This document shows, piece after piece, positions 17,506-58,579 of a stretch of DNA of 64,000 nt. Made by a program: the position numbers and the translations under genes. The stretch's first letter is position 1. Each line of letters starts with the position of its first letter. Where the stretch lies: the NCBI GenBank assembly GCA_028023455.1, contig JAQFVV010000002.1:18476001-18540000 (forward strand). Direction: 5' to 3'. Under the pieces are notes generated by a model. The model worked only from the letters and a program-made list of their open reading frames with translations. It had not been told where the DNA came from and made no database searches. The stretch is from Epiperipatus broadwayi (lineage: Eukaryota > Animalia > Onychophora).

Positions 17506-18923
17506 AAATTGAGAGAGTGCAAACTTCTCAAGCACTTGTGACTATTAGTAACCAATCAGATCTTAAGCACTGGGACAGGGAATTTAACAAGAAAAGAGTG
17601 GTTCCCACTCTTTTCTTTACTTGTCTTTTTATATATCCAAGCCAGTCCAAAGTGCTTATATCTGAGAGTGTAAATCTTAAATATCATCACACCTAATTGA
17701 CTGAGTTCAAATTATAAACATACAGTGTGAAATCTTTCGATTTACTATGCAGTAGTTTTTCGATGTTATAACTTTGCAGCAATATATGTAAATAATATTT
17801 TTATAAAGCACAGACGGTATTGAAAATTAAATTGAGAGAGTGCAAACTTCTCAAGCACTTGTGACTATTAGTAACCAATCAGATCTTAAGCACTGGGAAA
17901 TGGAATTTAACAAGAAAAGAGTGGTTCCCACTCTTTTCTTTTCACTTCTTTTTATATATCCAAGCCAGTCCAAAGTGCTTATATCTGAGAGCATAAATCT
18001 TAAATATCATCACACCTAATTGACTGAGTTCAAATTATAAACATACAGCGTGAAATCTTTCGATTTACTACGCAGTAGTTTTTCGATGTTATAACTTTGC
18101 AGCAATATATGTAAATAATATTTTTATAAAGCGCAGACGGTATTGAAAATTAAATTGAGAGAGTGCAAACTTCTCAAGCGCTTGTGACTATTAGTAACCA
18201 ATCAGATCTTAAGCACTGGGACAGGGAATTTAACAAGAAAAGAGTGGTTCCCACTCTCTTCTTTACTTGTCTTTCTATATATCCAAGCCAGTCCAAAGTA
18301 CTTATATCCGAGAGCGTGAATCTTAAATATCACACCTAATTGACTGAGTTCAAATTATAAACATACAGCATGAAATCTTTCGATTTACTACGCAGTAGTT
18401 TTTCGATGTTATAACTTTGCAGCAATATATGTAAATAATATTTTTATAAAGTGCATACAAGTAAAGAGGAGAGTGGGAACCACTCTTTTCTTGTTAAATT
18501 CCCTGTCCCAGTGCTTAAGATCTGATTGGTTACTAATAGTCACAAGTGCTTGAGAAGTTTGCACTCTCTCAATTTAATTTTCAATATCGTCTGTGCTTTA
18601 TAAAAATATTATTTACATATATTGCTGCAAAGTTATAACATCGAAAAACTACTGCGTAGTAAATTGAAAGATTTCACGCTGTATATTTATAATTTGAACT
18701 CAGTCAATTAGGTGTGATGATATTTAAGATTCACGCTCTCAGATATAAGTACTTTGGACTGGCTTGGATTCTTGTTAAAGTACTTTGGACTGGCTTGGAT
18801 TCTTGTTAAATTCCCTGTCCCAGTGCTTAAGATCTGATTGGTTACTAATAGTCACAAGCACTTGAGAAGTTTGCACTCTCTCAATTTAATTTTCAAAACT
18901 GTCTGCGCTTTATAAAAATATTA
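17506..18923. mobile_element. TSD-flanked fold-back concatemer of a 323-bp unit
   Basis: Three head-to-tail units starting at 17506, 17829 and 18152; inversion at ~18456, then about 1.5 inverted units; exact 14-bp TSD TTTAAAACTGAATT at 17492-17505 and 18924-18937. Confidence 0.95.
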
Positions 18924-19619
18924 TTTAAAACTGAATTGTAAACTTGTGGTTGTTTTATCAAACTGTAATTAATCTTTATTTTTGTGCTAGTAGTGACATC
19001 TATTAGTGTTTTTATAAGTTTCTAGTCATTAAAATTTCTTACCGATTCATGTTATAATGTGCCAAATGCCATAGTGAATGTATTAAAGATTTTAAGTTTA
19101 GGATGGGAGATATTACTAATTCTATATTTGATTTAATAATTATAGAATAATGTCTAGTTATTCAAATCCTACTTGCTATTTTGAATTTATATAGCTTGGT
19201 TATAATCTTCAATTACCCAGCAATCATTATAATGTTTGTATTGTTATATGATTCAAAGTTCACTTCATCCCATAATAAGTAACTGTTCTGATTATAGGCC
19301 AACTCTATGTTATAAGGTACAATCTATGAAGATTATCTTAACAAATAAATGTAATTCTAACCGTATAGTTAGCCATAATATCCCTTGAAATGCATATGTT
19401 GGATCAGAGTTAGTATCTTATTAAGTCAGACCATTTTATTATTGTATTAGCTTTCCAATACTTGTTTTGGAGATTAGCTTGTGTTGGCATTGCAGACATT
19501 CACTAATTACTTTAAATGCAAATGTAATTAGTCATGTTTTATTCATTGTATTGTACTTGTGTTAGGCCGGTAATACACACACACACACATATATATATGT
19601 ATATATTCATACCTTGCTA

Positions 19620-20050
19620 TTTTCTATGGGTAAATCAGCAAAGACCATCCCAATTATGTTGGCAGCCAGCATAATGGTGGATAGAGGTCACATCTAGGGG
19701 CCAAATTGTTTAGGTATGAGCTTCAAATAAGTAAATCAGGTAAGGACCCACTATGTTTGAGTAGCTGATCTGATTTCCAAACTTTAAGATTATTTCATTA
19801 CCAAGCTTCTCAGTTCAAATGAACTACACATCTTATATGTGGATGTAAGTTCTCATCATACCCACCAAACCCCTATAAAATTGTTTAATTTGCAGATGGT
19901 GGATCATAGGTAATGCTAATTCAAACCATTCCACCCTTTGAATTATAATTATTTGTGAATTTACCCAAGAACATCGGGAATTCCGGTGAAACAAATTATG
20001 ATTTAGATATCTTTTATAGTTGATAATTATGTCCAAATATTAATAGCTTG
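19620..20050 (-). pseudogene. Possible Penelope-like RT relic
   Basis: Fragments DI..CFTGIP and LKFGNQI..SNIVGPYLIYLFE resemble PLE RT motifs (DxxSLFTNIP; FGxxxYxQxxGIPMGSxxAPxLAxLFL). Confidence 0.35.
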
Positions 20051-23000
20051 TCTTAGATAGTCAGCAATATTGACACTGTAATATGTTTCCCATCAGAAAA
20101 AACATTGGTGTTTTGGTAAAACACAATAAGGATGTTGAAAATCATTTGGCACATTGCTTTGTTATAGATATCAATCGCTCATAAAACATGAAGGTTATTA
20201 ATCCTTGACACTGTATGTAATAATTGATTGAACTTGACTAATTGTATAATGCATAATGGCATTAAAATAACAATATTTTAACCACCAGTTTAATGTAATA
20301 TATATTGTCTTACATTAATCATTACCAGTTATAACAAACTTATTTAAATTTACTTTATTTCCATTATCTTTTTTTACCGTACTCCAGTCCAATTAAACCC
20401 ATTAATTAATGTAAAATTTATAATGTGTGATATTTATAACATTTGTTTTACCAGTTTGTTTATTAAAATTATTTTGTCATTCATTTCACAAGTCCATTCA
20501 TGATCCTGTTAGTGTAGGTAAATTTAATAGAATTTTATGCTTCTCCCATTCAGTGGGACTTGGATTAAAGAGAACTTAAATGTATCACAGAAAGCATTGT
20601 TTAAATATTAAATCATGTAGCACAGGCATAGGTTGGAGATTAGTCCAATATGGGATCCTGTGTCCCATTCAATCAGGTTTAGTATATTTGACTTGGACTC
20701 TGGGTTTTGTTAAGTGAACATATAATTCTGACCATTACAAATTATATACACATGCATGTACAATTGAAACTTTAAAAGATGCCATAATCATAAGACCTAT
20801 TTTGTTTTTTGATTAATATAATTATTTATAGAATTCTTTTGCACATTTCACAATGCTGTCCTTTATAGTCATAGTGCCATTTTTTTTGTCACCACTGAGA
20901 AACTGTTCAAGATGTAATTTTATACTTTTGAGCTTTGTTTTCTTTTATAGTTTTTTTTACCACTATTTTTTTATGTGGTCATTAATTCACTTTCTTAGCA
21001 GTTTACAGAATCGAGATAATAACTTCCTCTAATTGGTTATTTAAAAATATTTTCATATTATTTACTTTTTTTTGTACATTACTTATTTTGTTGAAAGGCT
21101 TCTTTATCTAGTAATTCTTAATAGAGTACCAGTTATTTTATTATTAATTTTATTCAAATAAGCTATCTTAGTTATTTAATATTTTAAAATAATTTAAATT
21201 CATTGGAGTGTCTCTGAAGAGGGTAAGGGCTATTTTATTTTTCTAGCTTTGCATAACACGACATCTTAGACTGCTTTTTAATAATTACTCTCTATGTGAG
21301 ATTGACTGAGTTGATTATAACATATTTTTCTACTAATGAAAATCAAATTCAGTTCTGTATGTCTTTATTTGGATGCTTCCTGATTATTTCTGTTTAGCAA
21401 CTTTTTTCAAAATTCATAAAATACAATAACTCTTTTCTTTTTTTGCAAATTCTACAAGTCTATGTCCTCTCACATTTCTGTGTTCATAACCAAATTTTAT
21501 CCACAATATTAAAATTTCCCAAGACAATTTTAAGAAGTTATTTGACCTAATTCATTAAAGCATTCACCATTTTTATATATGTTTGTCCATTACAATAAAA
21601 ATTTCGGAAATGAACTGAATATTATTACGTTTGATATCTTTCTTTATTGCAAGTAAACAATACATCTATGGCTTCTCAACGAACTAATTATGCTTGCACA
21701 GATATTTAGAACCATTGCATTAGAAAACGTTAACATCAAAATATTCAAGTGAGTAACGGATTAAAATTTAATGGTTAATAATAATTTTAACTGAATTTTT
21801 TTATGCAAATCTTCAAGTAAACAAATTTATCATTATTTTTTTTAATCATCCAAATTTATGAAATAAGTATATAATGGTATTAAGTTACAAAATCAAAATA
21901 AAAGTTTTGAAGTAATTATAGATATTTCAAGTCAATTTCTTTTATAACTGACAATGGACCAAACTGATTCCAAAGTTTGTAAGCTAATGGATAGTGCATT
22001 TTTGTTATAATTGTTTGCCTGTAATATCTATAATCAAAGTATATTAATATATGGCATTTAAGTACTAAATATTGAATCTTTGCTTAATAAAACTTGCTAC
22101 AAAACAAAAATCTAAATATATTTATATTTTCAGCAAAAAAAAAAAGTATAGTAAAGAAATGGTTGGTTAAAAAAATGATGTGTATGTATACATGCATGAT
22201 TTATTAGTTAGAGACATTAATATTTTATTAAATTGGAAAATTTCTAGTAGAAAGACTTAAATTTTTTTTCAGTCCAAAAGTTTCCATCAATGAATGTTAT
22301 CATTTTGAAATATAAATGAGTTGATTTATAAGAAACTATAATTTAATGCATTTTACATATCATAAGAATGGAAATAAATTCTTTATGTTTAATAAACTTT
22401 TACAAATTTATATTATCTCTAATTCCTGGAGAAATTCTTAATGATTATAAACCACTTTACCTTTATGTCATTTTGTTTTTTAATTCAACACCAGTTTAAT
22501 CTTAGAATTATATATATATATATATCAAAATGCAGGCCACTACTTCTATACTTTCTGTCTTGCTGTATTCTTCAAATATCATTAACTAATTCCACTTTAG
22601 AATCAGCATTTTTTAAATCTTCTACATTTCCAATAAATGTTTTATAACCTATTCGCTCCCCATGCAAGTTCAGTTTTTTTTTCTTCTTCTTCTTCATAAG
22701 TAATTAAAATTATTTTCCCCTTTATTCTTTTCAGCAGTTTTACATTTTTCATTCTACTTTCTTTAATCAATTCAAATTTCTAAAGTTTCCATTTTTTTCT
22801 CCTTTCCCAATTGACCAGATCTCTCTTCATACAAAACCACACGGCAAATTCAATAAAAAAAAACATTTAGTAAAACTTTTCTTAAATATAATTCCAGTGG
22901 ATGGCAAAATAATCCTTTAATCTGTTTAAATACTTTAATCCTAATTCCATATTCCTTTCCCCTGCTTTTAATATCAGGTTATCTCTTTTCATTTTCAACA

Positions 23001-23689
23001 CTTCTTTAGTTACCAAATCTTTCTATAGCTTATTTACTCTGAATTAATTATTCCTTTCTTATTACCAAAAAAAAACATTTTTTTAGATAAATATTTTAAT
23101 ACTATTATGGATTAACTTAAGTAAGTAAATTTAAAAAAAAATCTAATATCTATTTCAGATTTTCTATTAGTAAAGTTATATTAAATAAACATAAGGCTAT
23201 TCACAAATTTGAAAGAGTCAGCAAGAGATTCTAATCAATACTTAACTCCCTAATTCATGAAAAGAAATATCATTTTCTAGATGAACGTAGCATGGCTGCT
23301 TAGCTTTTCTGAACTACATTGAATATTGGGAATATAAAAGTCTAGTTTGATTAATAAAAACACTTTTGGGTATTATTTTTTTGTTAATAAAATTAGACTT
23401 ATATATATAATATACTCTTTTAATATAGCATAGAAATGCAAGCAGACTTATTAAAAAAATTAATGGAGTTGAATTTTATTTTCATGATTTGTGGAGTTAA
23501 TTAGTTTCTTATGCTGATATCTGTAAGTTTATCAATAATCATTTCATGTTTGTTTCCAATGTCTTCACTAATAGAAAATTTGGTGCACAATAGAAATTAG
23601 GTTTCCGCTCAAATTCTCTCTATTAAATCTTGTTCTAAATGTGCTTTATCCTTCTCCTTTGTGCAATCTTTATTTTTGCATATATATAT

Positions 23690-24100
23690 TATCTAATGAG
23701 CTTGCCAATAGCTCTTAATAAGCTTTTCAGAATATCCCCAAACCCAGACCAGTTTCTATTTCTGGCTTCCTCAGTGAGGAGCTAGGTATTCAAGCATTAG
23801 ATTTAAAATACCAGGTCAAGCCCAGCACTTTATCTAATGGTTATCTATTAAGTAGAAAATCTAACATTTTCAGACATCCATATGTCTTCAAATCCAGCTA
23901 ACTTAAATAGCCATATGGGATTGAACTAAGTTCAGATATATCATATATAAATAGCTTTAGCAATATGAAATCGCCAAAGCCTTAATAGCAAAAAATATAA
24001 TTGCAAATAAATCAAGTCATATATCACATGACCTAATTCAACAAGCTTGTATTACAAATGTTATTTAATGAGCTTGTCAATAGTTCTTAACAAGCTTTTC
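23690..24100 (-). mobile_element. Family C HHR repeat: one 372-bp unit plus a terminal partial repeat
   Basis: Direct repeat taatgagcttg.caatag.tcttaa.aagcttttca at 23694 and 24066; degenerate HHR at 23743-23778 (CTGAGGA...GAAACTGGTC); TSD-like CATATATATA at 23679 and 24100; homologous to 32609 and 38255. Confidence 0.7.
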
Positions 24101-24149
24101 ATATATATAGTAGCCATTTGTAAATAAAAATGACCATTCCATTCAAAGA

Positions 24150-24800
24150 AAAGAGAGGCAAAAAAAAAAAAACTGCTCTAAAAACGGGTTTTGCAAATGA
24201 TTATACAAATCCATCCACAAATATATTCTGATTTATTTTTCTTTTTATATATTTTACAATGCCATCTTTTAATTTCGTTAGTAGAAAACTTATTCCTGAA
24301 ATATGTATAATTATAGTTTTTCAATGTATTTCCATTCTTTACCATATCTTCCCTATGGAAACAATTAATAATACATTTTTTAGAATGACTTTGAGGCGAT
24401 CCTTCTAATGGACATAGAATCTATATCTCTCACAAAAACCATGTTCAACATAAAATACACTTTGAACCAATCTTGTATTGTTCATTCACTTTATACATCA
24501 AATACAACAAAAGTGTGATTATAGTATAACATCCAACAAAATGAACAGCATAGAAATTAGTTTTATTACCTTGCCATTGTATCTTTAATTTTTTGCATAA
24601 TGCTCTTAAGTGAACCTTTTTTAATAGCTTAGTATTGCATAAATTTAAAGTCTCACTTCCATACAGTAAATTGGGTAAAATAACATTTCTATAAACACTA
24701 ACTTACATGAGTTATTTCCTTGTGAATATTCTATCTTTTAATTTATTAAAAGCAACAGCAGCTTATTGGAGTCTGTGTTATACCTTAATATCTAAGTTCT
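24150..24800 (-). mobile_element. RTE-clade LINE 3' RT remnant
   Basis: VILPNLLYGSETLNL and RALCKKLKIQWQ match the RTE C-terminal motifs (LLYGSETW; LRRILKIxW). Confidence 0.7.
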
Positions 24801-25261
24801 ACCTATCTACTTAGGAAAATATCAAGGTACTTAAATAAGTTATATTTCGAAATTGATAACCACCTAAACTAAAACTTCAATTTTTTTCTTTAGTCATTGG
24901 TTAATATAAAACTTGAGTTTTTGAACATTAAGTATTAAATCAAAGTGTTTAAATATTGCACACAAAACTTTAAAGTATATATTTAAAATAGACTTTTGAA
25001 CTAATGAAAATAGCATAATTATCAGCATTCTATAAATCCAGAATCCAAGAAGGTCTTGTTTTACCTTTAATCAATTTGAATTAAAATTTTCACTTCAAAC
25101 CAAATTGCATTTTGATACTTGTTTCATTGTTGCCTATAATCAGTTCCAAGATAATTGTCATAAAAACTGAAAACAATATTGAAACAAATACAAATCCTTG
25201 TTTAGTGTAAGTTTTCATTTCAAATGCCTCAGATTTTCCACAATATAATAATACTTCAATT

Positions 25262-25437
25262 GCTTGGATTCCAAGACATGGTAAAAGGTCCAGAAAGAGA
25301 CCACATGTGAGATGGATGGATGAAATAAGAAAGTGCAGAGATGATGTGAAGAAGAGAAGCTAAAGATTAGAGAAGATGGATTGAACTTGGAGAGATCTCC
25401 ATCCTGCAGGGGATTGATAATGGTTGATGATGATGAA
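25262..25437 (+). mobile_element. RTE LINE 3' end with (GAT)n tail
   Basis: WIPRHGKR...RWMDEIRK followed by gatgatgatga; same family as 35885 and 51663. Confidence 0.75.
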
Positions 25438-25820
25438 TAATACTTCCTGTCATTCCATCATGTAGAATCTCTATAAGAAACAAATTTTAGTGGATAACCA
25501 ATTAATTTAAAATAATGCTTTAAACTTGTTTGATTAATGCTTGACCAAATTAATAAAAATTATAAATCATTCTTTGTGCCTGCAATTTTTTTTTTTTTTG
25601 TATTTGTCTGGCAACAAGAAACATGTCTATAATCCTTTTTGTTTCTCTAAAACAACAACGAGACTCTCACAACTATTCATTTTGTAACTGAAAGAAACCA
25701 ATCCAACAATAATTTTTGTAAGTATCTTTGCTGTAGTATATAATCCTTTTATTTTTAAAAAATGAAATAATAGAAGCCTTAAAAAACAAGCAGCACAATT
25801 TCATGGGTCAATATATTTCT

Positions 25821-26018
25821 TTAAAAAATTCCAAGTTTTGAAGCTAACATGTCACTGCCATATTTTAAAACTTTAGATATTTCATCAGGACTTGCAACAT
25901 TTTCATTATTAAGAGTTATAAAAAGCCGTTTTGGCTTTACTCCAAACTGTGTGAGACCGACATTTTCTAGGCCACTACTACTTCTAATAAAGGTAGGGTG
26001 ATTTCTAAATAGCACTGC
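25821..26018 (-). CDS. Candidate terminal coding exon, product unknown
   Basis: ttcag acceptor, then an open 65-codon frame AVLFRNHPTFIRSSSGLENVGLTQFGVKPKRLFITLNNENVASPDEISKVLKYGSDMLASKLGIF* with protein-like composition; no family recognised. Confidence 0.3.
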   Translation of the reverse strand, partial: AVLFRNHPTFIRSSSGLENVGLTQFGVKPKRLFITLNNENVASPDEISKVLKYGSDMLASKLGIF

Positions 26019-26326
26019 CTGAACATATAATCATTGCCAGATAAAACTCATTTCAAATCTAGTTCCAAACAGACTCATTCGTGATTGTATTGCATCAAAT
26101 AAAGATGGCAACTAAAGACTTCCTGCCTACTAATCCTATTCCTGCTGTTGCTTTCTTAACTTGAGTTAAAAAAAAATGAAAATGGGAGAATGAAAGACTT
26201 TTCTTGTAGTTAAAAAATGCAAATATGATTGCACAATCTCATAGTCTCACTAAACACAGAAGGAAGTCCAATGACATGAGACATTCTACACTTGGCCTGT
26301 ACACTGATTTATGTGATTAATGAATG

Positions 26327-27195
26327 AGGTACTGTGGTATTAGAGCTGCGACATGACGAATTATAATCTTTAATCATTAAATTAATTAGGTTATTAAATC
26401 AAAAACATATTTTAAAATCTACATTAAAAAAAAAACAATTTAACAAAAAAAAATAGAAAAAGCATCAATGTGAAGAATAGTTAAAATGCGTGTTTAAATC
26501 AAATTGAGTGTGTGTTTGCACGTGCATATTCTGCATAATCTATTTTAATACATTGTACAGGCTTACACCTGCATTTATATATGTAATATATGCAGGATTC
26601 GAACTCAGACTTTCACACGACTTACAATTCTCAGTGCCATCTTATATTGCTGACTCACCTGATCACACACATGTTGAAAAGATAAATAATCACCAATAGA
26701 CGTATTTCGTGTTAAACCAGCACTCATTAAAGTATGAAGATTGGTTATCTTAATATAAAGCTGAGTACTAATTGTATATATGTGTGGAGTGGTAATCTGA
26801 ACCAACTTATGAGTTCTGGTTTGGCACGAAATACGTATATTGGTGATTATTTATCTTTTCAACGTGTGTGATCAGGTGAGTCAGCAATATAAGATGGCAC
26901 TGAGAGATGTAGGTCGTGTGAAAGTCTGAGTTCGATTCCCGCATATATAAATGCAGGTGTAAGCCTGTACAATGTATTAAAATAGATGCAGAATAGGCAC
27001 ATGCAAACACACCCTCAATTTGATTTAAACACGCATTTTAAATATTCTTCACATTAATGCTTTTCGTATTTTTTTTGTTAAATTGTTTTTTTTTTAATGT
27101 AGATTTTAAAATATGTTTTTGATTTAATAACCTAATTAATTTAATGACTAAACGATTATAATTCTTCATGTCGCAGCTCTAATACCACAGTACCT
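26327..27195. mobile_element. 870-bp near-perfect palindrome centred on a family A HHR
   Basis: Arms 26327-26727 and ~26808-27195; short TSD TGAATG at 26321-26326 and 27196-27201. Confidence 0.95.
26801..26844 (+). ncRNA. Family A hammerhead motif, core mutated
   Basis: ACCAA CTTATGA GTTCT-ggttt-GGCAC GAAA TACGTA TA TTGGT; G5 mutated; a partial antisense copy lies at 26692-26727. Confidence 0.6.
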
Positions 27196-28122
27196 TGAAT
27201 GAAAAGGAGAGAAAAAAAAACGATTGGAATTAGTAATTAGCCTTTGATGGGTAAACATCCTATCCTTTAAGGCAGCAAGAAATATTTTTAATCAGACATT
27301 ATTTGTTATTCATAGTTAATTTTCATACAAGTCATTCCACTATCTGCGATGTATGGTGCTGATTGGTAACTTGTGCACAGTATCTTACACATATATACAA
27401 AAACAAATATATTTATACAATGAATTTATATTTACACTCAATAAATTTAAATAATTTATCCTTATTCTCTTTTTATGCACGCTTTTAGAAATGATTTTAT
27501 ATGTATAACATAAAAGCGTTTGAAAAAAAAAAAGGTTACAAAAATAATTTTTCACATAAACAAAAATAATTTCACGTAAAAAAAAAAAAAGTATAGTTAA
27601 GTGATTTTCATTAGATACAGAATACAATGTTTGACAGATGTTTTTATTTATCGATATTTTCAAGTTTTCAAATAATAACTTTCTTAAATCAAAAAAGAAA
27701 TTTAATAAAACATTAGTAAAATTTACTAATGACAATTTACTGATTTCTAGTTACAATTTTCAAATACCTTTTACATTTTATTTTTCTGAAGATTTAAATA
27801 AATAATAATTTCGAAAATTACAAACAATAGTAACAACAACAATAATAATAAATTTAAAAATGTTAATACTGTAATGAAAAAAAGGTCATATACAATCTAA
27901 AACTATTCTGACTACATATTAATTATAATTAAAAGAAATCAAAGTTAACAATGTTTATTTTTTAATATGGGAGGGGGGAGTTCTGTGATAGATTCTTGAT
28001 GGTGGACAAAATATCTTGACAAGAAAAAAATTATTAGTATAGAAATTTTATTACGAAATTTATTGCACATAGTAGTAATTTCTGTCATAAAATGAATTCA
28101 AATAAAATAATAAGCAAAAGTT

Positions 28123-28233
28123 GTCAAGCGTTGTTAGCCGAGAGGTCATCGTACCCGCCTTGCAAGCAAGTAGTTGGTTGCAGACGGGTGTGGGTTCGCG
28201 TCCCGGCCGATGCTATGACATATGGGGGAAAAA
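28123..28233 (+). mobile_element. tRNA-Gly-derived SINE (GCAGACGG / TATGGGGG subfamily)
   Basis: TSD AAAAGTT at 28116-28122 and 28234-28240; closely resembles the 61692 copy. Confidence 0.9.
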
Positions 28234-29169
28234 AAAAGTTTGTTAGAGTGTAATTATTTATAGTATATTCATTTTGTAGGAATTCCTTTTTAATAACAAA
28301 TACATATTGACTGTCGTATTTTGAAACAGTAGTCATGGAGTGACATAAAGAAAATTTTTTGTTTGGTATTGCTATCAGTTAGATTTCAGTAGGTGAAAGA
28401 ATTTATCATTCTATGAATTTTTCACACATATAAAGATTAGTATATCCATACTATGTGATGGTTACTGTACCTATACTTCTCTATCATGATTTTAAAATAT
28501 ATATTCAATGAAAGCTATCTCCAATAGTTAAATACAATGATCACATGTGGAAGAATGGCATGAACCTCATCGGTGGATATCTATTTTATCAGTAAAGTGA
28601 TGGAAATCTATACTTCTATTAATATTGTACACGTCTGTTTTACATATTCAAAGGTATTATGGATTCTTTCAATATTTTCATCAAGTATAGGATCATTTAA
28701 AAATTATCAAACTTAAAATAGAATAAAAAAGTTGTTCATCCAAAACTTTATTAATATTACAGTTTATTTTTTTCTTTAACATCTCAAATATCCTTAAATT
28801 CTTTTTCAATATTGGCAGTACTTATTCTAAATGGTAAGAATCAAATTTAATCTTAGTAAGTTATTTGAAAAGCTGTAAGAGTTCAACTCATATACATAAT
28901 TATTTTAATCTGTAAAAAAATGATAAGGTGAAATCAGTTTCCATAATGGCTTTCATTATTTTTTAATTCATTTAATCACTAGATATTTAGAAAGCTGGGA
29001 AAACATATTTTCCAAATGGTTTTGGTATTTTAATGTAAAGATTTTGTCAGAATACTAAATATTATTCACTACTAACTTATAGATAGGAATTTACTACAAA
29101 TTGAATAAATAAATCGCTTCTTACAGATAATACAATAAAAAAATATTATGATTCTAATCTTTAGATATC

Positions 29170-30560: not shown

Positions 30561-30603
30561 TATGAAATATCTTTATTCATATGTTATAAAAAGAATGTTT
30601 GGT

Positions 30604-41979: not shown

Positions 41980-42298
41980 ATACATTGTACAGGCTTAGCC
42001 TGCATTTATATATGTAATATATGCGGGATTCAGATTCAGACTTTCACACGACCCACAACTCTCAGTGCCATCTCATATTGCTGACTCACCTGATCACACA
42101 CATGTTGAAAATATAAATAATCACCAATATACGTATTTCATGCTAAACCAGCAATCATCAGTTGGTCTAGATTGCTGGTTTAGCATGAAATATGTATATT
42201 GGTGATTATTTATATTTTCAACATGTGTGTGATCAGGTGGGTCAGCAATGAGATGACACTGAGAGTAGTGGGTCATGTGAAAGTCTGAGTTTGAATCC
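41980..42298. mobile_element. Family A snap-back palindromic insertion
   Basis: Left arm carries the complete 3' end; fold-back at ~42170; exact 13-bp TSD CATATAATATTTA at 41967-41979 and 42299-42311. Confidence 0.9.
42123..42166 (-). ncRNA. Family A hammerhead motif
   Basis: ACCAA CTGATGA TTGCT-ggttt-AGCAT GAAA TACGTA TA TTGGT. Confidence 0.7.
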
Positions 42299-43904: not shown

Positions 43905-44155
43905 TTTATTATAATATATAGGGTATATGAGCACAGACTTTCTCATAACACTGATACACTTGAACACATATATGTTGAAAAGATAAATAATCACCAATAT
44001 ACGTATTTCATGCTAAACCAGCAATCATCAGTTGGTTCAGATTACCATCTCTTCACATATATGCTATAAGTGCTCATATATATATTAAGATAGCCAATTC
44101 TCATACTTTAATGGACAGACTTCAATCTATACCACACTCCAACTCTTCAACCATC
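43905..44155 (-). mobile_element. Family A monomer with HHR at 43993-44036
   Basis: Colinear with 11407-11715; HHR identical to the 42123 copy. Confidence 0.85.
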
Positions 44156-46709: not shown

Positions 46710-46737
46710 CTTCTGGATGGCAATAAAATTGAAAAAG
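46710..46737 (-). CDS. Candidate 28-nt micro-exon
   Basis: ttctctag|CTTTTTCAATTTTATTGCCATCCAGAAG|gtaaat; splice-site pair only. Confidence 0.2.
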
Positions 46738-47290: not shown

Positions 47291-49691
47291 GATTCATCTA
47301 CATTATCTATCATTATCAATACTTGAAGAGAATAATTAAAATTAGGACTGGACTGATAAATACTATCATTAAAGATGTGTGCATATATACAGTAATACTA
47401 TATTCTCTATAAAATCATAGTTTAAAATATTTTATTAGCTGATAAGGGTTTTCTTCATATTTAACTAAAACGGCTTAAGTATAATGTTTATGTTTATTTA
47501 ATTCAATATTTTATACTTACTTTATATATAAGCAATGAGTTCATATTTTATTTATTGTAAATAAATTGTCAACTTATTTTTTTATTAACATATTAATTTG
47601 TTTTGCTTTTCAAATTCATTCCAAACATATCATGAGAAGCTATGTAATCCACGGGGGGACATGCAGAGGGTAATGGAAGTACAACTGAATGATGATGATT
47701 AGTGATATCCAGAAGTAAATTTTCTACTTGAAAAGCTTGGCCCCAAAAGATAATTTTAAATTGAATTTTAAAAAAAGAAATTAAAAATATTTTGGAAATA
47801 CTTAAAGCAAGCCTCAACGTTAATGTTATTTTGATCATCATCAAAGTATTGGTTATATTAAACGTATATTTGAATATTTTGAGTTTAATCATTTTATTTA
47901 AACTCATATATATTTCTGTTAATCTTATTTTTCAATATATTCTGATATTTATATATTAATTCTGCTCTTTTACAAAATCATTATATTTCTAACACATATT
48001 TACTTCATCTTTCACACCATTATAATATAATTTCATTTTTACATAATTCAATGCAATTTATAAAATAACAAAATATTATTTACATAATCTCATTAATAAT
48101 ATCTATATAATCTCATTACAATTCAAAATAAACTCAATGTGGCAAATTGAAATAAATAGATAAATATCTTTTCGGACATTAAAGATTTGAAAAAGATATC
48201 AATTTTAATTGATAATCTTGCCAGTAGGGGAAATTTTGACTTTAAAGGATAACGTTTTTTACAAAAATTATATCGCAGCAGTTATACTGAAAAGAGTATT
48301 TTTTTTTTTTAAAAAAAAAATATTCATATACTATAAGATACTGATAATGGTTAAATTACTGAACTTACATTTCTTAAAAGTTTCTAAGCCTACATTAATT
48401 AATTAATTATTATTATTGAAGAAAAAGGAAATAGAAAGATGAGAGAGAGAGAGAGAGCTTTTAACAGTAAAAAACAATTAAATCTAATTGAATTTTATAT
48501 CTATGAAATATAGACAATTTGTAAAATGTAATTTAATAAAAACTTACTTATAATATTTACAAAGAATTCAGAATCCTTTTTCTCATATAAAGAAATGCTT
48601 CAATATGAAATATTGTTACTGTTAATATAATATGATACCTAATTGTAGAAAATTCAGTCAAAAATCACTGATTTAGTAAAAAAAAAAAATTAATTAATCA
48701 TATATAAAATATACAATTACTTATTAGATAGAATGCATAATTTAAAATAATCTCAAATAAATGTACAATTTCCTAATTGACCGACTAAAAAGTAGAAAAT
48801 ATGGTAGATAGTTAAGATAATTTATACCAACAACAATATCATTACAAGGATAGATGAAAGGAACTATTCTTACAAGATGAGCTCTTAGACCAAAGTAGAT
48901 TTAGTAGCAAACTTAGAACATTGTACAAATATATATTATTTTTTTAAAAAGACTGCATTTAGAATTAAATAACAATTATATCTGTAACAACTAAACAAGC
49001 AAAAGTTATTAAATAAATGAAAAAAAAAAAGTTATAGGAGTAAGTAAAAGGGTTATATGAAAAGAATTAAGCAGAAATTTTTAGTGATAGCTACTTCAAA
49101 TTAATTACATAAAGGATGTGATCATGCTTTGCAGTTTGTGTAAAAAGTTAATTTATTTCATTACTTGAAACTACTTTTGTTTACTGGAATCATTTTTGGC
49201 AGTTTACAACCTTATTTGTAACTATTTTGCTGTAAATAATGCATTTTCTCAATTTAACTTTTTATATCCATATAATTTATTATTTATATTTTGCTTTAGT
49301 GTGTAAATAATGTGATAATTTTTTAGAAATAAATATAATACGTTGTTAGGTCTAAATCAATCACCCCCCCCTTCACTTTAAATTATGTTAAACAGTTATA
49401 ATTTGAAATATTTTCGTTGTTTGAATTCTGCTAATTTTATTACATCTTAAATTAGATTTTTTTGAAATATTTGTTGGTCAAATTCTGTTAGTTTTACTAA
49501 GTCCTAGATTAGATTTTTAAAACAAAAGTCTAATGTAGTGTTTTCTTTACATGGTACATAAATAAATCTAAGATCAAACATGTAATAAATTTTAAATATT
49601 TACATAAAGAATATTAAAAAAATGAGTACACATTTTTACAGTCTCTTTTGCATAACATATAACTTAACAAAATATTTCATGACAATACCAC

Positions 49692-49827
49692 CTGATTTCA
49701 TTAAAAAAATCATAGACGCTTTTAGGTAACAAAAGGATGCAAACTAGGATTAGAACCAGAAGATATGCATAAAGTTGTGGATACCGAGATGGCAGCCATA
49801 ATACTGTATACCATATTTGAGATCGAT
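49692..49827 (-). CDS. Candidate 136-nt coding exon encoding a hydrophobic segment
   Basis: Strong (t)9cag acceptor; open frame RSQIWYTVLWLPSRYPQLYAYLLVLILVCILLLPKSVYDFFNEI; weak gtggta donor, or the frame runs on to WYCHEIFC*. Confidence 0.35.
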
Positions 49828-50378
49828 CTGAAAAAAAAAAGTAATAACAAATAAATGTTTTTATGCATACAGTTTTAGCCAGTATTTATATATATATTAA
49901 TATTGCTAAGCATTATTAGTTTATGCATAGTAATATAAATATAAATTCTATAACATATACACTTAAGTTAAAGTCCATAAATTTGACAATAACCATAATA
50001 TTTCCAAGTATAAGGACTCTTCAAAACCCTTGGTTTCCATCTAATTTTTACCATATAATTAATTGTTTCCTGAATTGTCAAGATCTAGTCCTTCTTCTCA
50101 GTATATATTCAGAATAAATTTGCATATGCAAAGTATTAAACTTGTAAGTGAAACTGATACCATTAGAACATATGAATTTGAACCAAGAAATTTGATCCAA
50201 AATGATTCCAATCCTGAGTATATACCAAGAATGATGGAAAAAAATGTTTTATGAAAAAACTTACAGTATTCAGGATGGTGTTAAAAGACTTTGAAGGGTA
50301 AAAAAAGGCTAAAAATACTGGAAGATATAAGCCCAGGAAAGAATTATTGAACAATATAAAAGTAGAAAGAACATAATA

Positions 50379-50784
50379 TTTGTTTGAAGGTTTGTGACGA
50401 TGGTATATTATTAGATGTGATGTGTTGGATTATTTCCATCATCTACAAGTTGAATCTATAGATAATTTTAAATAAATCAAATTTCTACTATATGTTACTT
50501 TGACAGAATAATTCAGTTGGTTGGAGTGTTTGCCTTAAATTTGATATTCAAGAATCTAAAGGTGTGAGTTCAACTTCTAAGCGAATAATGTCACTGTGCA
50601 TATAGGTCAGCAAAACCTGAAGAAGAGTGGAGAATAATACTATTCGAAATGTTGTGTAATTACTAACCTGTGTTGTCTAGTTGTGTGTTATTACTAACAA
50701 GTTGTTTGTATTTGGAAAGTTTAAAATTTTCTATACATTCAACATTCACTTATAGATGATGGAAATATTCCAACATATCACATC
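50379..50784. mobile_element. Penelope-like pLTR insertion with terminal inversion
   Basis: Exact 16-bp TSD TAGAAAGAACATAATA at 50363-50378 and 50785-50800; inverted arms ~50412-50468/50724-50787; HHR-like CTGAAGA...CGAAATGTTG at 50617-50654. Confidence 0.8.
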
Positions 50785-51249
50785 TAGAAAGAACATAATA
50801 ATCAAATCATGGTTCTGCAAAGATTTTGACTTAAGAAATGGAGCATCAAAATGATATTGAAAATAACATTGAACATTTAGATGGTTTTCCAAAAAAAAAT
50901 TCTACATGATGAATTGATTCTGAAATAAATTAAGTGAATTTCTGACATTAACAAGTGAGCATGAAATAAATTGACATTTTCTTAATAAAAAAAGTAAGAT
51001 GCAAAATATTTGTTTATTTTATTTACATTTATTGAAAACACCAATGAACATTTTAAAAATACAGATATTATCATTTTGCCAAAGCTGCATTTTACAACTT
51101 GAGTGAAGAAAAAGGATAGAATTAAACAAGGTGTTACAGTTAAATAATCAGAAGACATATGGTATTTCTTAAAAACAAAATAGTGGATGTACTGTAAGAG
51201 CAAAATCAATTGTAGCATTATTTGTTTAATCTGTAAAAGAAATATAATT

Positions 51250-51472
51250 TATCATACCATTCACAACTTTCATAAACATTTTATCAATACTAGTTATTTA
51301 TATAAATATTAATTATATATTTGAATATTGTAGCTCTGATGATGACTGCAGCTCAGTCGAAACTGTTAGTTTTGATATAAATAAATAGTATTGATAAGGT
51401 GTTTAAGAAAGTTGTAAATGGTATACGTTAAAGTAGAAATCAATACATAGGAAAAGGGAGAAGAAAAAGAAA
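51250..51472. mobile_element. Family B snap-back insertion
   Basis: ~50-bp inverted arms 51254-51303/51375-51424; exact 15-bp TSD AAAAGAAATATAATT at 51235-51249 and 51473-51487. Confidence 0.85.
51332..51371 (+). ncRNA. Family B minimal hammerhead motif
   Basis: AGCT CTGATGA T GACTG-cagct-CAGTC GAAA CTGT T AGTT: intact core, 5-bp helix II. Confidence 0.65.
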
Positions 51473-51662
51473 AAAAGAAATATAATTACGGGCATAATCC
51501 ATAGCTAATTTTTATAATACAGATAGTTTATTATTGTAAAGATTCTTCTAAGAGAAAAAAAAATTTTCATATAAAGTAATTATATAAAGTTTACTGTCAA
51601 TAGGAAATGAGTCAGTAACCACTTTTGTGGTTGGAATCACACAATTATATGACTACTACTAC

Positions 51663-52500
51663 CATCATCATCATTTTTAAACATTATCAGTCCACTGTAG
51701 AATGGTCTCCAAGTTTAATCCAGTTTCTCTGATCCTGAATCTCTTTTCATACCTGCAAATTTCCTTGTTTCATACATCCATCTCATATGGGGTCCCTTTC
51801 TGGGTCTTTTAAAATTTCTTGGGATTCTGTTTAAGACCTCAACTAAATCACTATGATGGTCAAATATCCAATATGATTTATTTGTGAATATTATTATTTG
51901 TTTATGTGAATTCTATAATATAATATCTTGAGAAGGTCTCAATGGAGATGAAAGCCGGTTTGATAAATATTTAAATATAATTATTAATAGTTGTTTATTT
52001 CAATCTTGTTTGATTGATTATTTATTTAAGACCTCAACTGTCCATATATAATCATTTCTTCTACTAACATGCCAGATCAGCTCCATTTCAGTCTCTTATT
52101 TCTTTCACTGGTGTTAAGACATATGTTTGTTCACCCATCTATGTATTTCATTTACAATCACTTCTTGTTATTCCTAATATACATCTCTGCATACTTCAGT
52201 AAAGGTCTGAAGCCTCTGTACTGATGTTATAATAAATGTCCAAGTCCATTATATAGTAAAAAAAGATAAAATACATTTATTAAAAATCTTCTTTCCAAAA
52301 TATAAAGGTGTATATTTTTTAAATAGTAAGTTATTTCTATCAAAAGCATTCCATCCAAATTTAGATCTACTATTAATTTCATCCACTATGTTCCTATCTC
52401 TATTAATAATCTGATTAAATTATTTGTAATCATGATTACTAATCTTTATTTTTTGGTTCTCAGAAAAGTCATTGAACATCATTTTTGCCTATAAATAAAC
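51663..52500 (-). mobile_element. RTE LINE 3' portion split by a 180-bp insertion
   Basis: Same 3' end as 25262 and 35885; continues past 52040 with a KWSxxGHV-like region. Confidence 0.75.
51845..52024 (+). mobile_element. 180-bp insertion with a variant HHR-like motif
   Basis: Exact 15-bp TSD TTTAAGACCTCAACT at 51830-51844 and 52025-52039; CTTGAGAAG GTCTC-aatg-GAGAT GAAA GCCGGTT at 51927-51960. Confidence 0.7.
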
Positions 52501-54009
52501 ATAAGTTTTATAGGTACTACTTTGGCCTAATATAACAATGTATAAAAAACTATTCTCCTGGTAATATTACTTTTTCAAATGCTGACCATGTAGTTCAACA
52601 AATTACATGGGATTTTGGAAAGTGTGAAAATAAAGAATGGTTGATAATTGAACAATCAAACATTATATCCATTGTAAGGGTTCACTTCTGTCATATTTGA
52701 AGATCCCTTCCCCTTTGATTCTATATAATGATAACAATAAATCCCACGCGACCCTTTTTTTGGACAGAATGTGAATTCTTGAAAATATAATTCATGTTGA
52801 ATTGATTTATGTATATATTTAAGATTGCAATGATTTTCAATACATCAATAATCATAAAAATTGAAGAGTGGTGTTATTATATTGGAAGATGAATTGATAC
52901 CTGGCTTTCCCTATTAATAAGATGATCAATGCAAGAACAGACTACTTCTTCTTATCTTTTATTTTGAAAAATGATGATAGTATTTTGGTTAGATAAAATT
53001 TAGTTATGTTTCTGGGGTTTGCATGGAGCAGATATCAGACTGTTGTGAATTATAGTGGTAAAATTTACATTCTCTACCAAAAGACTTGTTTCAGTGGTAA
53101 ATTAAGTATATTACTTTGAAACCTTCCATATGTAAAATTTATACTTATATTTATTAATTTATTCTATTAAATTGTTTGACTGATATATTTTTGACAGTTT
53201 GAAGTAGAAATTAGATTGCGATTAAATTTTATATGAGTTTATATTTTGGTTATTTATTGATAATTGATCTACTAGGTCTATGTAATAAGGGTTCATTTTA
53301 GAAATAATGATGATTTTTCTTAATAAACAATGTTTATTCCAAAAATTGCAGGAAATATTAATGTTGATCCTGAGTTCTTCATATATTTGTTTAAATGTTT
53401 GCTATCTATGCACTGAATGAGTAATTTTGAATTATCAAGCTCTTTATTGTATTCCAGAAATTATAAAATTAGGTGAGGGGGGGGGTATAAATTATTGACC
53501 CATAAATATTTTTCAAATGATGGTTAAGAAATAACACAGAAATATTCTATAGTGGCTTTTGATTATAGTATTAATAATTGGCTTTTATAAATGAGGGAAG
53601 CCTTATTGGACTACAATTCTACATATTAGATAAATGCACACTTTCAAAACATTTAGCCGAATTATCATAAGTTATTAGATACCATTACATAGAAAGCCCA
53701 ATAAACCATCTTTTATTATTTAGTTCAGTAATTATAATACTAAGGATAAAAATTATATATCTTGAAAAAATGCACCCAGAAAGCATAAAAATAACTATTA
53801 GAGAACTAACCCCGAAAGCTTTATTAAATTATTGAAATGTTCAGCATTTGGAATTCTTGAAAAAGAAATACATCCCATGTAAATTTTTAATAAAACAATG
53901 TGTCTCAATGAAAAAGTAACTGGTTCTCTTTCCAAACTGTCTATAGTTTCATAACCGAATGACTAAAGGTATTACACAATGACATAGTTTAGCTATCCAC
54001 CATAAAAAG

Positions 54010-54200
54010 ACATTAACATGTCTGAATATGTCAGTATATTCCATATTTTAGAGATCATCTTCAATATTCTTCCTCCCATCATAAAATCTTGCAAACCATT
54101 TGAAAACATAATTCATGGCTTTGCTATCTTACACAGTTGGAATCCCTTCAAACATTTCAGTAACAGTTTTTCTCAATTTAAAACAAAATTGAATGTTAGT
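54010..54200 (-). pseudogene. Mariner transposase N-terminal HTH relic
   Basis: NIQFCFKLRKTVTEMF...VFKWFARFYDGRKNIEDD matches the mariner pattern IKFCFKLGKTATET...VFEWFKRFxxGRxSxEDD. Confidence 0.7.
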
Positions 54201-56302
54201 ATCATCCCATCACACACTAACTTGTGATCCAGATATACTTGCACCATACAATTTTTGTGGTCAATAGTTGAACTATGTTGCTATGTAATATACATGTTGA
54301 CTCAGAAGTGGTACTACAGGAAGCTTGGAGAGAGAGAATCAGTCACCTTTTAATTGGAATACATTGTATATATATTAAAAAATAGTTAGTCAAAAACTCA
54401 TAGACAGATGCATTTAAATATTGTAATAATGACTATCAAAACATCAGTAAGAAAATACACTTTTTAATGATGAAATTGACCAGAAGTTAAAAAATCACAT
54501 CTTATCCTCTTATAGTTACACCACATTATCATCTTAACGCCAAAATATAACCATTATAATCAAAAATATAGTTATCCAATTATTAATGAATGACATATCC
54601 ATTTAAGTGTAAATATAATTCTCTACTTTCAAATTTTATTGTTGGAAATATATAAAACACCACTATTAAAGAACTGTCAATTTCAGAAACTTTTAGGTCA
54701 GCCATCATAATGTAACAAAAATGTACACAAAGATTAAAATTTCTGTATTGCACTTATTTATATATAAAAAAATTGAATTATTAAAAAACGAGATGCAAGC
54801 ATGTTTTTCTACATGTCCACGAATCCCTGTAATACATATAGATTCTTAACGAGATTAAAAGCTGATTCTTCAAACATATAACACCTGGGCAACTTTCTAT
54901 TAGCTCATAACCTACCAAAATGTATTCAATGAACAATTTTTATAGCAAATAATTTATGAAAAAGCTGAATTGTTAATAAATCAGATCAAAACATGTTCAT
55001 CTGCATGATAAATGAATAATGTACATTGATTCTTAACTGTGTGCAATGTATCCAAAGCAAAAATGTAAACAAAAGAAATAACAAACTATGAATCACTTAT
55101 TTAATGATTCACAATATGTAGCTACAGTAGAAGAATCATGGGTAAATTTATTTACTGGTTTGAATCTTTGCATCCTCTATAATAGATTGTTAATAGTTAA
55201 GCTGCCATGAAAAAAATCCATACACTAAATAATAATAACAACCCCAAAAATTGCAATTCTACACTAAAAATTTGTCATCAAAACTATAATGGTGATAATT
55301 TCTAATATCTAGTAATTTTTACATTGGCCTTTATGTGCAATGTCTATAATTTGTGTAGCGGCATGCAATCATTGATAGGTGAATATTATTTTCATTGGTA
55401 TATGTTCTGCCACAATTTATGTCACTTTGCAGTGTCTTTTAGTTTTATTTACAGTACAAGTCATGAAGGCACTGAATTTATATGCAAGGATGATGCTTTT
55501 AAAGTTTATGCTTTTGGAGTTTATCTCTACCACATTATATGATTCTTACTCAATCCTAAGTACAAGAAATATTGCACTTTAAAGACTAAGAAATAATGCG
55601 TAATTATTATGAAACATTTATACAAACATGTTAGACATTTTTTAGCTTATTGCTCTAAAATGGGACAACATAGAACCTTCAATGGTTGTGGATGTCCATA
55701 TAGTATAAACATAAATGCAAAAAACTACTTGATTCTTTTATTAAAATATGTACTAAATTAAAAAAAAAGATGATTTGCTTACTTATACAAAAAAAAATAT
55801 TACAGGATGGGCATCTGTTTTGAAAATGTGGTTAGATTTAAGAAGAAAATCAACATAACTGAAAAACTGTTGGAATGAATTTTTTGTTGTGTAAGTTTAT
55901 AAATAAAAATTATTATTAAAAAGAATATTTCAATTTTTCTAATATAGAAAAAAAGTAATAAACTGAAATATGTAATCAAAACAATGACGTTTGTTCTTTC
56001 ACATTTGCTGCTAAAAATATTTTTTAAAAAAAGTGTTTTAACTTTATTACTAAAATCTTAACAAATATTTGTTCAGAAATCATAAAGTGCCAAATTGCTA
56101 TTTTAAAAAATAACTGTTACAAAACATTTGTGAGATATTTATTTTCACTCTATCATAACTTTTGAATTATCATGAATAAATAAAATATGATTGTAATCAT
56201 ACATATTTTTGACTTAAAATAAATATTTTGCAAAATAATCTTAAATATATGAATGAAAAAGGAAAATTTTTTTTTTTTCCTTTTGAAATAAAACAAAAAA
56301 TC

Positions 56303-56354
56303 TACCAATCAGCAGCCTTGTTACTCATTACCAATCAGCAGCCTTGTTGCTCAT
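56303..56354 (+). repeat. 26-bp tandem duplication containing CCAAT
   Basis: taccaatcagcagccttgtt(a/g)ctcat x2. Confidence 0.85.
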
Positions 56355-57656
56355 TTGTATAAAGCTGCCATCTTTATATATTTTTTAAAATTAATAAATC
56401 AATAGAATTTTAGTTTCAATTTTATCACCAAAATGAATACAAAATTGGCAAATAACTGCTACAGATAGTTGCAAAAGAATGAATTTAAACCAAATGACAA
56501 AAACCATCCTATTTTGCACTGAATATATGCTGCTAATAAGGAAGAGATTAAATTTGAAAATTTTGGGTTTATCTGAAGGAAAATTTAATAATATATTCAT
56601 TTTTTTTAATGATAGTAATAAATGCAAATTAAAATATGATGAAATGAATTAAACTATGAGATTGTTATTTAAAAAAATTACAATATTTTTGAAGATTGGT
56701 TTATTTTCTAAGAAACACTTGTAAGTAGTCATTAATAAAATACAATATCCACTCAATGGAATTTCATATTTTTATAAGTATAATATGATAACCATATTCA
56801 TTTTCAGAATGACTAGATTTTGAAAGATATTCATTTATAGCACACTTCCACTATGCAAGGTAGATCTTTTACAGAACTGTTGTATAGCATACTTATAAAT
56901 GTACAATGACGCAGAAACAATGGTGCTGATATTTGTATATAAAATCTTACAGTATTTCATATAGTATAATGATTTTTCACCTCTTTAAAACATGTTAAAA
57001 AAAAACAATTCGAATCTTGTCAGAGAGTGATGTAATAGAAAAATATCAAACTGTCAACATGGGCATTGAGATCTAGGTGTTTAATGCCTATAGAATATGT
57101 AAAAGATGAATGAAATGCATGTCTAATGAGAGCAAATAGTGTACAGTTGCAATATAATTGGGATCGAAAAAGTGAATGCACTGATAACAATTTGAAAATA
57201 CATATATATGTGTTCCATAAAATACTCCAATTAATATTTAAATCATATTATGAATAAGCAGCTTTCAAAATCTAACCATACTTTGAAACTAAATATAATA
57301 AACATATTGCACTTATAGGAATTTGAATTCTTATTGGATGGTTGTATTTAACCAATGGTTATTGATGAGCTTTTATCTTGAAAGAAAATCCATCTGGAAA
57401 AATGATTTTATAATTCTTCAAACCAGCAATGCTGAATGTGCTTTCATTTCCAAATCTATTAGACAATGCTTGTTTCATTTTAGTATATATCGACACTATT
57501 TCAGTATTACACATTTCAGATATCATTTCATGTAAGTTGTGCAAATTTATTTCCATTGCACACATATTAATTGCCATGCTTACTAACAATTAATTAATAC
57601 TTTTATAGTAGAAAATCTAATCGCATGTTGAAAATAAATATAGAAAATATATTATA

Positions 57657-58579
57657 TAATAGTATTAGCGATTAAGCCAATGCACATGCGCTTTAAAGAG
57701 ATTATATAAATGAATACTCAATTTTCCAGACACGAGATATAGTATTTTAGAAAGAATGGAATGAATCCACCCATTCTTTCAAACCCAAACGTTTATGTAT
57801 GGGCAAATCTTAAGTGTGTGGAAATAAGAGTGTGAGATGTTACACGATCACTTTAAATTACATTTATTAAGTTTGAACGAATGACACTTTGCGAAATCTT
57901 TACAATTTACGAACCGTCATTCTTTAGTTGAAATTAAACATATATAATGAGATATTATTTTATATAGCGCGAATGTTTATTTATGTAATAGTATTAGTGA
58001 TTAAGCCAATGCACATCCGTAAGAGATTATATAAATGAATACTCAATTTTCCAGACACGAGATATAGTATTTTAGAAAGAATGGAATGAATCCACCCATT
58101 CTTTCAAACCCAAACGTTTATGTATGGGCAAATCTCGTGTCTGGAAAATTGAGTATTCATTTATATAATCTCTTTAAAGCGCATGTGCATTGGCTTAATC
58201 GCTAATACAATTACATAAATAAACATTCGCGCTATATAAAATAATATCTCATTATATATGTTTAATTTCAACTAATGAATGACGGTTCGTAAATTGTAAA
58301 GATTTCGCAAAGTGTCATTCGTTCAAACTTAATAAATATAATTTAAAGTGATCGTGTAACATCTCACACTCTTATTTCCACACACTTAAGATTTTCCCAT
58401 ACATAAACGTTTGGGTTTGAAAGAATGGGTGGATTCATTCCATTCTTTCTAAAATACTATATCTCGTGTCTGGAAAATTGAGTATTCATTTATATAATCT
58501 CTTTAAAGCGCATGTGCATTGGCTTAATCGCTAATACTATTACATAAATAAACATTCGCGCTATATAAAATAATATCTC
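57657..58579. mobile_element. TSD-flanked fold-back concatemer of a 329-bp unit
   Basis: About 1.45 forward units (starts at 57657 and 57986), inversion at ~58135 via ATCT microhomology, about 1.35 inverted units; exact 13-bp TSD AAAATATATTATA at 57644-57656 and 58580-58592. Confidence 0.95.

Follow-up and report, generated by a model that had tools for sequence, protein, structure and literature searches.

The window analysed here is a 64,000-nt stretch of the genome of the onychophoran Epiperipatus broadwayi (assembly GCA_028023455.1, contig JAQFVV010000002.1, positions 18,476,001 to 18,540,000), and it contains two short insertions composed of tandem units, which are 323 nt long in insertion 1 (unit 1) and 329 nt long in insertion 2 (unit 2). 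Sequence comparison shows the two units to be homologous but so diverged that standard tools barely detect the relationship; they are not unrelated sequences that share a few motifs. Both insertions have the architecture of Penelope-like elements (PLEs) and are a hammerhead-less variant of a known Penelope-dependent, non-autonomous kind of element. They probably belong to two sister retroelement families, far apart in sequence, whose members are short, non-coding and non-autonomous and are mobilised in trans by the reverse transcriptase (RT)/GIY-YIG protein of a PLE, possibly one from a hammerhead-less clade such as Naiad. The motifs shared by the two families lie at or just past the points at which RT would start, and are most likely copying signals rather than a new ribozyme.

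A first-pass annotation had reported an ordered set of motifs in two units that were described as otherwise dissimilar: a GYGAAATCTTT motif (motif 1), an AGCGC/TATA motif (motif 2), a TATTAG...CCAAT pair, and a purine/pyrimidine hairpin. All of these were recovered in both units (Table 1), as were the matching unit sizes and the matching insertion architecture, a direct partial tandem joined to an inverted partial tandem. Motif 2 is indeed found downstream of motif 1, but at a start-to-start distance of 68 nt in unit 1 and 61 nt in unit 2 instead of the reported 80 nt or so. The dissimilarity of the remaining sequence is true only by eye, because the three inter-motif stretches combined aligned better than their shuffles (z 3.4, p 0.0005).

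Whole-unit comparisons bore out the suggestion of a distant relationship. In a rotation-free circular global alignment the two units scored 43.5 as opposed to 23.5 ± 4 for the nulls (z 4.6-5.0), and none of 300 nulls (150 per type) reached this score; the reverse orientation scored only 25, which is null level. An alignment anchored at the insertion terminus, as defined by the target-site duplication (TSD), beat all of 2000 native-segment nulls and all of 2000 dinucleotide-shuffle nulls (z 3.9-5.6). This result held across three scoring schemes, and two controls, namely the reverse orientation and an unrelated fold-back element in the window (family A, 26327-27195), scored at null level. An nhmmer search that started from unit 2 alone returned the unit 1 copies as top non-self matches, collinear and on the right strand; blastn showed no match between the 323-nt and the 329-nt families. 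The landmarks of the two units are also kept in a similar register: the distance from the unit start to the tip of a first hairpin (hairpin A) is 44 nt in unit 1 and 38 nt in unit 2, from hairpin A to a second hairpin (hairpin B) 111 and 112 nt, from hairpin B to a conserved box 100 and 108 nt, and from this box to the terminus 22 nt in both. Both kinds of terminus, with and without a tail, sit at aligned positions across the two families.

The insertions themselves closely resemble those of PLEs, whose footprint consists of partial tandems forming pseudo-long terminal repeats (pLTRs), an adjacent inverted and 5'-truncated copy at the 5' end, and a one-sided tail of 30-40 bp (Craig et al. 2021, PMC8557442). 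In both insertions a direct partial tandem is joined to an inverted partial tandem with the 3' ends facing outward, and the right arm continues beyond the point where the left arm stops, by 25-30 nt in insertion 1 and by 37 nt in insertion 2. The range given for insertion 1 reflects 4 nt that are ambiguous with the target duplication: the final 4 nt of the left TSD copy can be assigned to the element instead, as microhomology. Such possible microhomology of 4 nt is present at both left junctions (AATT and TTAT), and the two arms of insertion 2 overlap at the centre by 4 nt (ATCT). The target duplications, of 11 and 13 bp, are AT-rich, both start with AAAA, and one ends with ATT; the common AAAA start hints at a shared endonuclease preference, as far as two sites can tell. 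The limits of insertion 1 were confirmed by DNA contigs that link 17497/8 straight to 18934 and so represent related empty sites. The read data used here and below are Logan assembled contigs, which are 84-774 nt long and unstranded.

If the outer ends of both insertions are 3' ends, as in PLEs, each left arm has its sense sequence on the minus strand, and the motifs of the first-pass annotation, which were read on the opposite strand, are therefore the reverse complements of the RNA. On the presumed RNA strand, motif 2 takes the form GCGCTWTATAAAA, with GCGCTTTATAAAA in unit 1 and GCGCTATATAAAA in unit 2, and is part of the tail in both families, where it begins exactly 22 nt before the outer terminus. 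This tail box has no other occurrence in the 64 kb (0.17 expected by chance). Motif 1 is the tip of hairpin A, which starts just downstream of the tail terminus: GUAAAUC-GAAA-GAUUUC, the reverse complement of motif 1, in unit 1, and GUAAAUU-GUAAA-GAUUUC in unit 2. The tip pattern is confined to these two elements in the 64 kb (0.00 expected). The lower stems of hairpin A differ in sequence between the families but their pairing is kept, and hairpin B is found at aligned positions in both families with several compensated differences. In both families a weak AU hairpin, of non-significant fold energy, places the outer terminus in its apical loop.

The potential to fold is conserved, and it is stronger on one strand. 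The antisense folds of hairpin A reached -11.2 kcal/mol for unit 1 and -9.2 kcal/mol for unit 2, compared with the more stable sense folds listed in Table 1, and a two-sequence consensus fold gave z -4.6 for the sense strand versus -1.5 for the antisense strand against column shuffles. This asymmetry lends modest support to the strand assignment. Of the three roles that had been proposed for the motifs, namely promoter activity, RT recognition and self-processing, RT recognition appears to fit best, with the AGCGC/TATA motif in the tail and the GYGAAATCTTT motif as a hairpin tip just downstream. Hairpin A is likely to be a protein-binding element, by analogy with the one PLE for which such an element has been placed (see below).

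Table 1. Positions of the two insertions, their target-site duplications and their shared motifs and hairpins, numbered from the first letter of the window.
Feature	Position	Strand	Remarks
Insertion 1	17496..18926		3 direct units and ~1.5 inverted units
TSD left copy, insertion 1	17485..17495		AAAACTGAATT, 11 bp
TSD right copy, insertion 1	18927..18937		AAAACTGAATT
Left arm, insertion 1	17496..18455	-	~3 head-to-tail 323-nt units; presumed RNA sense minus; 3' end 17496, tail-less terminus
Right arm, insertion 1	18457..18926	+	~1.5 units, presumed sense plus; 3' end 18926, tail terminus
Tail, insertion 1	18898..18926	+	25-30 nt beyond left-arm end position; from inverted-repeat register and TSD-fixed termini
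Tail box, insertion 1	18905..18917		GCGCTTTATAAAA, inside tail
Motif 1, unit 1	18050..18068		GTGAAATCTTTCGATTTAC
Motif 2, unit 1	18118..18134		ATATTTTTATAAAGCGC
TATTAG...CCAAT, unit 1	18190..18202
CCAAT, unit 1 (sense ATTGG)	18198..18202	+	within AACCAATCAGATC
Hairpin A, unit 1	18039..18081	-	43 nt, -12.8 kcal/mol, z -3.2; starts 32 nt past tail terminus
Hairpin A tip, further copies, unit 1	17729..17745, 18372..18388	-
Hairpin A tip, further copy, unit 1	18659..18675	+
Hairpin B, unit 1	18235..18263	-	12-13 bp, 5' arm purine-rich
Hairpin B, further copies, unit 1	17589..17617, 17912..17940, 18464..18492
Insertion 2	57657..58579
TSD left copy, insertion 2	57644..57656		AAAATATATTATA, 13 bp
TSD right copy, insertion 2	58580..58592		AAAATATATTATA
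Left arm, insertion 2	57657..58135	-	~1.45 units of 329 nt, presumed sense minus; 3' end 57657, tail-less
Right arm, insertion 2	58132..58579	+	~1.36 units, presumed sense plus; 3' end 58579, tail terminus
Tail, insertion 2	58543..58579	+	37 nt
Tail box, insertion 2	58558..58570		GCGCTATATAAAA, inside tail
Motif 1, unit 2	57891..57910		GCGAAATCTTTACAATTTAC
Motif 2, unit 2	57952..57970		ATATTATTTTATATAGCGC
TATTAG...CCAAT, unit 2	57992..58010
CCAAT, left-arm copy, unit 2	58006..58010
ATTGG, unit 2 (CCAAT box on opposite strand)	58518..58522	+	39 nt upstream of TATA-like box
Hairpin A, unit 2	58274..58323	+	50 nt, -15.7 kcal/mol, z -3.9; starts 24 nt past tail-terminus equivalent 58250
Hairpin A tip, unit 2	58289..58306
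Hairpin A tip, left-arm copy, unit 2	57893..57910
Hairpin B, unit 2	58416..58452	+	GAAAGAAUGG / CCAUUCUUUC, 10 bp
Hairpin B, left-arm copies, unit 2	57747..57783, 58072..58108

The mechanism proposed here builds on the one PLE that was dissected in vitro, in which the target is AT-rich and both of its strands are cleaved and then extended, RT begins internally on the RNA at two neighbouring sites on either side of the tail, a template reaching ~55-60 nt 3' of these start sites is required, the protein-binding RNA is placed downstream of the start sites, and hammerhead cleavage is dispensable (Frangieh et al. 2024, PMC11167929). Applied to the present elements, an RNA longer than one unit would be transcribed from a tandem copy, and this multi-unit RNA would be bound by the PLE protein via a module of the tail box and the downstream hairpin A. 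The PLE endonuclease would then cut both strands of an AT-rich target 11-13 bp apart; since both duplications start with AAAA, both bottom-strand primers would end with TTTT. Each DNA 3' end would prime complementary DNA (cDNA) synthesis at one of two fixed internal RNA sites, and the use of two priming sites would produce two arms with outward 3' ends and a one-sided tail of 25-37 nt. Finally, the two cDNAs would join in the middle of the element, at arbitrary points of 5' truncation or template switching.

The candidate cis-module would comprise the GCGC-TWTATAAAA box in the tail, 22 nt from the outer start site, the extended hairpin A with its conserved tip, 24-32 nt downstream of the outer start site, and additionally hairpin B and the ATTGG box; the ATTGG box and the TATA-like box may double as an internal RNA polymerase II (Pol II) promoter. 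With hairpin A located 3' of the start sites, an RNA would have to exceed one unit in length to be a competent template, which would explain why the elements persist as partial tandems. In this scheme the architecture, the termini, the homology and the conserved potential to fold are demonstrated, and the sense strand, RT recognition and promoter use are inferred.

Two rearrangements were observed in the right arm of insertion 1, where hairpin B and its 5' flank (~44 nt) are deleted exactly, with a joint near 18769/18770, and where a perfect 31-bp tandem duplication (18747-18808) spans the joint of this deletion. The loss of hairpin B together with the duplication looks like RT slippage or template jumping at a stable RNA hairpin.

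Several points weigh against the reading of the two insertions as homologous PLE-mobilised elements with constrained copying signals. The best unbiased local alignment of the two units was non-significant (26 vs 22.4 ± 3.3 for the null, p 0.12), so that similarity beyond shuffles, a test proposed along with the motifs, failed for the single best local match and held for the collinear whole-unit set. The nhmmer matches across families were marginal, with E-values of 0.35-1.7. The ATTGG/CTAATA pair (TATTAG...CCAAT on the other strand) differs in position by ~34 nt between the families when the other landmarks are taken as reference, and the tail of unit 1, with 25-30 nt, comes out at the bottom of the published range of 30-40 bp. 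With one insertion per family in the window, and two independent families compared in all, constraint on the motifs is inseparable from a patchy survival of shared ancestry. The sense strand is itself derived from the PLE architecture, the family A copy in the window, and the fold asymmetry. Furthermore, an autonomous PLE partner, and a 3' similarity of the elements to it, are presumed by analogy, and the window contains no coding element.

Three other explanations of the motifs were weighed. It is possible, though doubtful, that their main role is that of an internal Pol II promoter, situated at the unit's 3' end and comparable to the U3 region of a long terminal repeat (LTR), with an ATTGG/CCAAT box of the NF-Y type 39-69 nt upstream of GCGC and TATAWAAA; in a tandem copy, transcripts of the next unit would begin ~10-15 nt beyond the tail terminus. 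A promoter role is compatible with RT recognition. Both units do contain ATTGG followed by GCGC-TATA(A/T)AAA in the same order on the presumed sense strand, CCAATCAGA is retained in diverged family 1 subfamilies with different flanks (seen at loose contig ends), and PLE transcription is believed to begin in the pLTR (PMC8557442, PMC11167929). Pieces of family 1 were also found in RNA-library contigs from the same species and one related species, but these unstranded contigs are no proof of transcription, may stem from DNA or read-through, and hold no evidence of transcript starts. Moreover, the distance from ATTGG to TATA is 69 nt in unit 1 and 39 nt in unit 2, a difference of 30 nt, CCAAT and TATA-like strings are frequent in DNA of 27% GC, and the exact 22-nt register of box and terminus is better explained by RT initiation. 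An absence of any special function, with the motifs being no more than the best-preserved remnants of a common ancestry, is unlikely, even though none of the motifs reaches significance by itself when the units are aligned locally without bias, the inter-motif stretches are weakly homologous too, the longest exact run of 9 nt is, by my own estimate, about what ~60% identity over 300 nt would yield, and just two independent sequences are available. What speaks for function is that the conserved blocks fall at mechanistically meaningful places, one in the tail exactly 22 nt from the terminus and one in a hairpin 24-32 nt downstream, that the lower stem of hairpin A changed its sequence and retained its pairing, and that the consensus fold is far better on one strand.

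The retrozyme-like size and concatemer form of elements that have no hammerhead, the conserved fold potential on the sense strand, and the position of three out of four inner arm ends within ~30 nt of hairpin B could all be taken to mean that a new motif capable of self-cleavage or circularisation, made up of hairpin A and the RNA around it, has replaced the hammerhead found in neighbouring retrozyme families. This is very improbable. Rfam ribozyme models (hammerhead, HDV-like, twister, twister-sister, pistol, hatchet, hairpin, VS and hovlinc) had no match in the whole window at the gathering threshold, and none in either insertion at E <= 10 on both strands with permissive filters, where only noise came up, and this leaves the idea of a different, known ribozyme without a match. 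The proposal that GYGAAA is the remnant half of a divergent hammerhead fared no better: a descriptor of the CUGANGA...GAAA core with at most one mismatch found nothing credible on either strand of either unit, and in unit 1 the GAAA caps hairpin A as its apical loop, a place taken by GUAAA in unit 2, and does not follow a helix II as the corresponding segment of a hammerhead does. Hairpin A lacks a multi-helix junction and is simply an extended hairpin, and inner arm ends near a stable hairpin are expected where RT stalls or switches template. The contigs contained neither RNA ends nor unit-length back-joints, although such unstranded, assembled data could not have revealed them, because they preserve no ends and tandem DNA would mimic a circle junction. 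A replacement for the hammerhead also seems unnecessary given that its cleavage is dispensable in vitro (PMC11167929) and that the Naiad and Chlamys clades proliferated massively without hammerheads (Craig et al. 2021, PMC8557442). A long shot of broader scope is that hairpin A and the tail box make up an undescribed RNA module that processes or circularises unit-length RNA, either as a ribozyme or as a protein-assisted cleavage site, or, less radically, that they are an RT-recruitment element, which would be the first one defined for an animal PLE clade that lacks hammerheads.

Family 1 is highly repeated: 5851 DNA contigs of a single run matched insertion 1 at a likeness of at least 80%. Differences among the unit 1 copies (17502-18927) are mostly transitions at CpG sites, for instance GCGC to GCAC or GTGC and CGTG to TGTG or CATG, which suggests methylation-driven decay. 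Insertion 1 is older than insertion 2, since its units are 94-97% alike as opposed to 98-100%. The flanks of insertion 1 (17300-17497 and 18934-19100) are themselves repetitive, and many DNA contigs, including one from a related species, match both flanks at 80-90% with the insertion absent and variable filler in its place. A set of 76 metagenome loci that matched a family 1 pattern was dismissed as chance matches, as they showed no blastn similarity.

The window as a whole has a GC content of 26.8%. Within it, no further copy of either family was found by blastn of each unit or by nhmmer, and no third related family by an nhmmer profile built on both families. No open reading frame (ORF) of at least 150 aa was found in the 64 kb, and the nine window ORFs of 85-116 aa had no Pfam match. 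The only Rfam match at the gathering threshold is a tRNA-like sequence at 8023-8094 on the plus strand (Rfam tRNA, 42.5 bits), which may represent a gene or else the head of a tRNA-derived short interspersed nuclear element (SINE). The family A fold-back has arms of 401 and 387 nt, and at its centre, in the right arm on the plus strand, there is a degenerate hammerhead-like core, CUUAUGAG...CGAAA; Rfam found no intact hammerhead in this copy, and its use as an orientation check depends on my reading of the degenerate core. More inverted-repeat structures are located at 14892-15937, 1625-1878, 6138-6295, and 42077-42249 with 43951-44026, with arms that are 75-98% alike and show no similarity to the 323-nt and 329-nt families.

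The closest likeness among known systems is to non-autonomous, hammerhead-less PLEs, such as the Chlamys element MRC1, which share multicopy head-to-tail pLTRs and an adjacent inverted, 5'-truncated copy with the present insertions (PMC8557442); non-autonomous Chlamys elements are known to give multicopy head-to-tail insertions (Craig et al. 2021, PMC8557442). PLEs of this kind and of the Naiad and Chlamys clades also have the one-sided tail of ~30-40 bp, the AT-rich targets, and the lack of a canonical hammerhead in common with them (PMC8557442). This is a likeness by architecture, and unlike the non-autonomous Chlamys PLEs described from green algae, the present units are only ~325 nt long and reside in an AT-rich genome. 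As short, non-coding tandem units they also resemble the non-LTR retrozymes of animals, which have units of 170-400 nt and are regarded as non-autonomous offshoots of the pLTRs of PLEs (Cervera & de la Pena 2020, PMC7229834; Li et al. 2026 preprint, doi 10.64898/2026.07.22.740005). In contrast to animal retrozymes, in which every monomer has the defining type I hammerhead, the present units have none on both strands.

A further comparison is with the Poseidon PLE of Anolis carolinensis (PAc, PMC11167929), as studied in vitro. Both systems have two discrete termini separated by a tail, both would use the two target strands as primers, and both have an AT-rich target; PAc moreover requires an RNA element 3' of its RT start sites, of which hairpin A would be the counterpart. 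PAc, however, starts in an AC-rich stem-loop within its ORF and carries a hammerhead, whereas the start sites postulated here flank an AU-rich GCGC-TATAAAA box and are followed by a hairpin with a GNRA-type tip, and there is no sequence similarity between the two.

What is new in this analysis is the statistical demonstration of homology between two such hammerhead-less families, the precise placement of the shared motifs relative to both termini, and the link to published data on internal RT initiation. Animal retrozymes are defined by their hammerhead, yet the role of the hammerhead in Penelope-type retrotransposition is doubtful, and the existence of short tandem elements that have the complete Penelope footprint and lack a ribozyme is an argument that the ribozyme can be dispensed with in vivo as well. 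To my knowledge, only one Penelope-type RT has been characterised in vitro so far. The presence of the same landmarks in the same register in two diverged families points to a small RNA region, consisting of the tail box and the downstream hairpin, as a testable recruitment signal for PLE RT.

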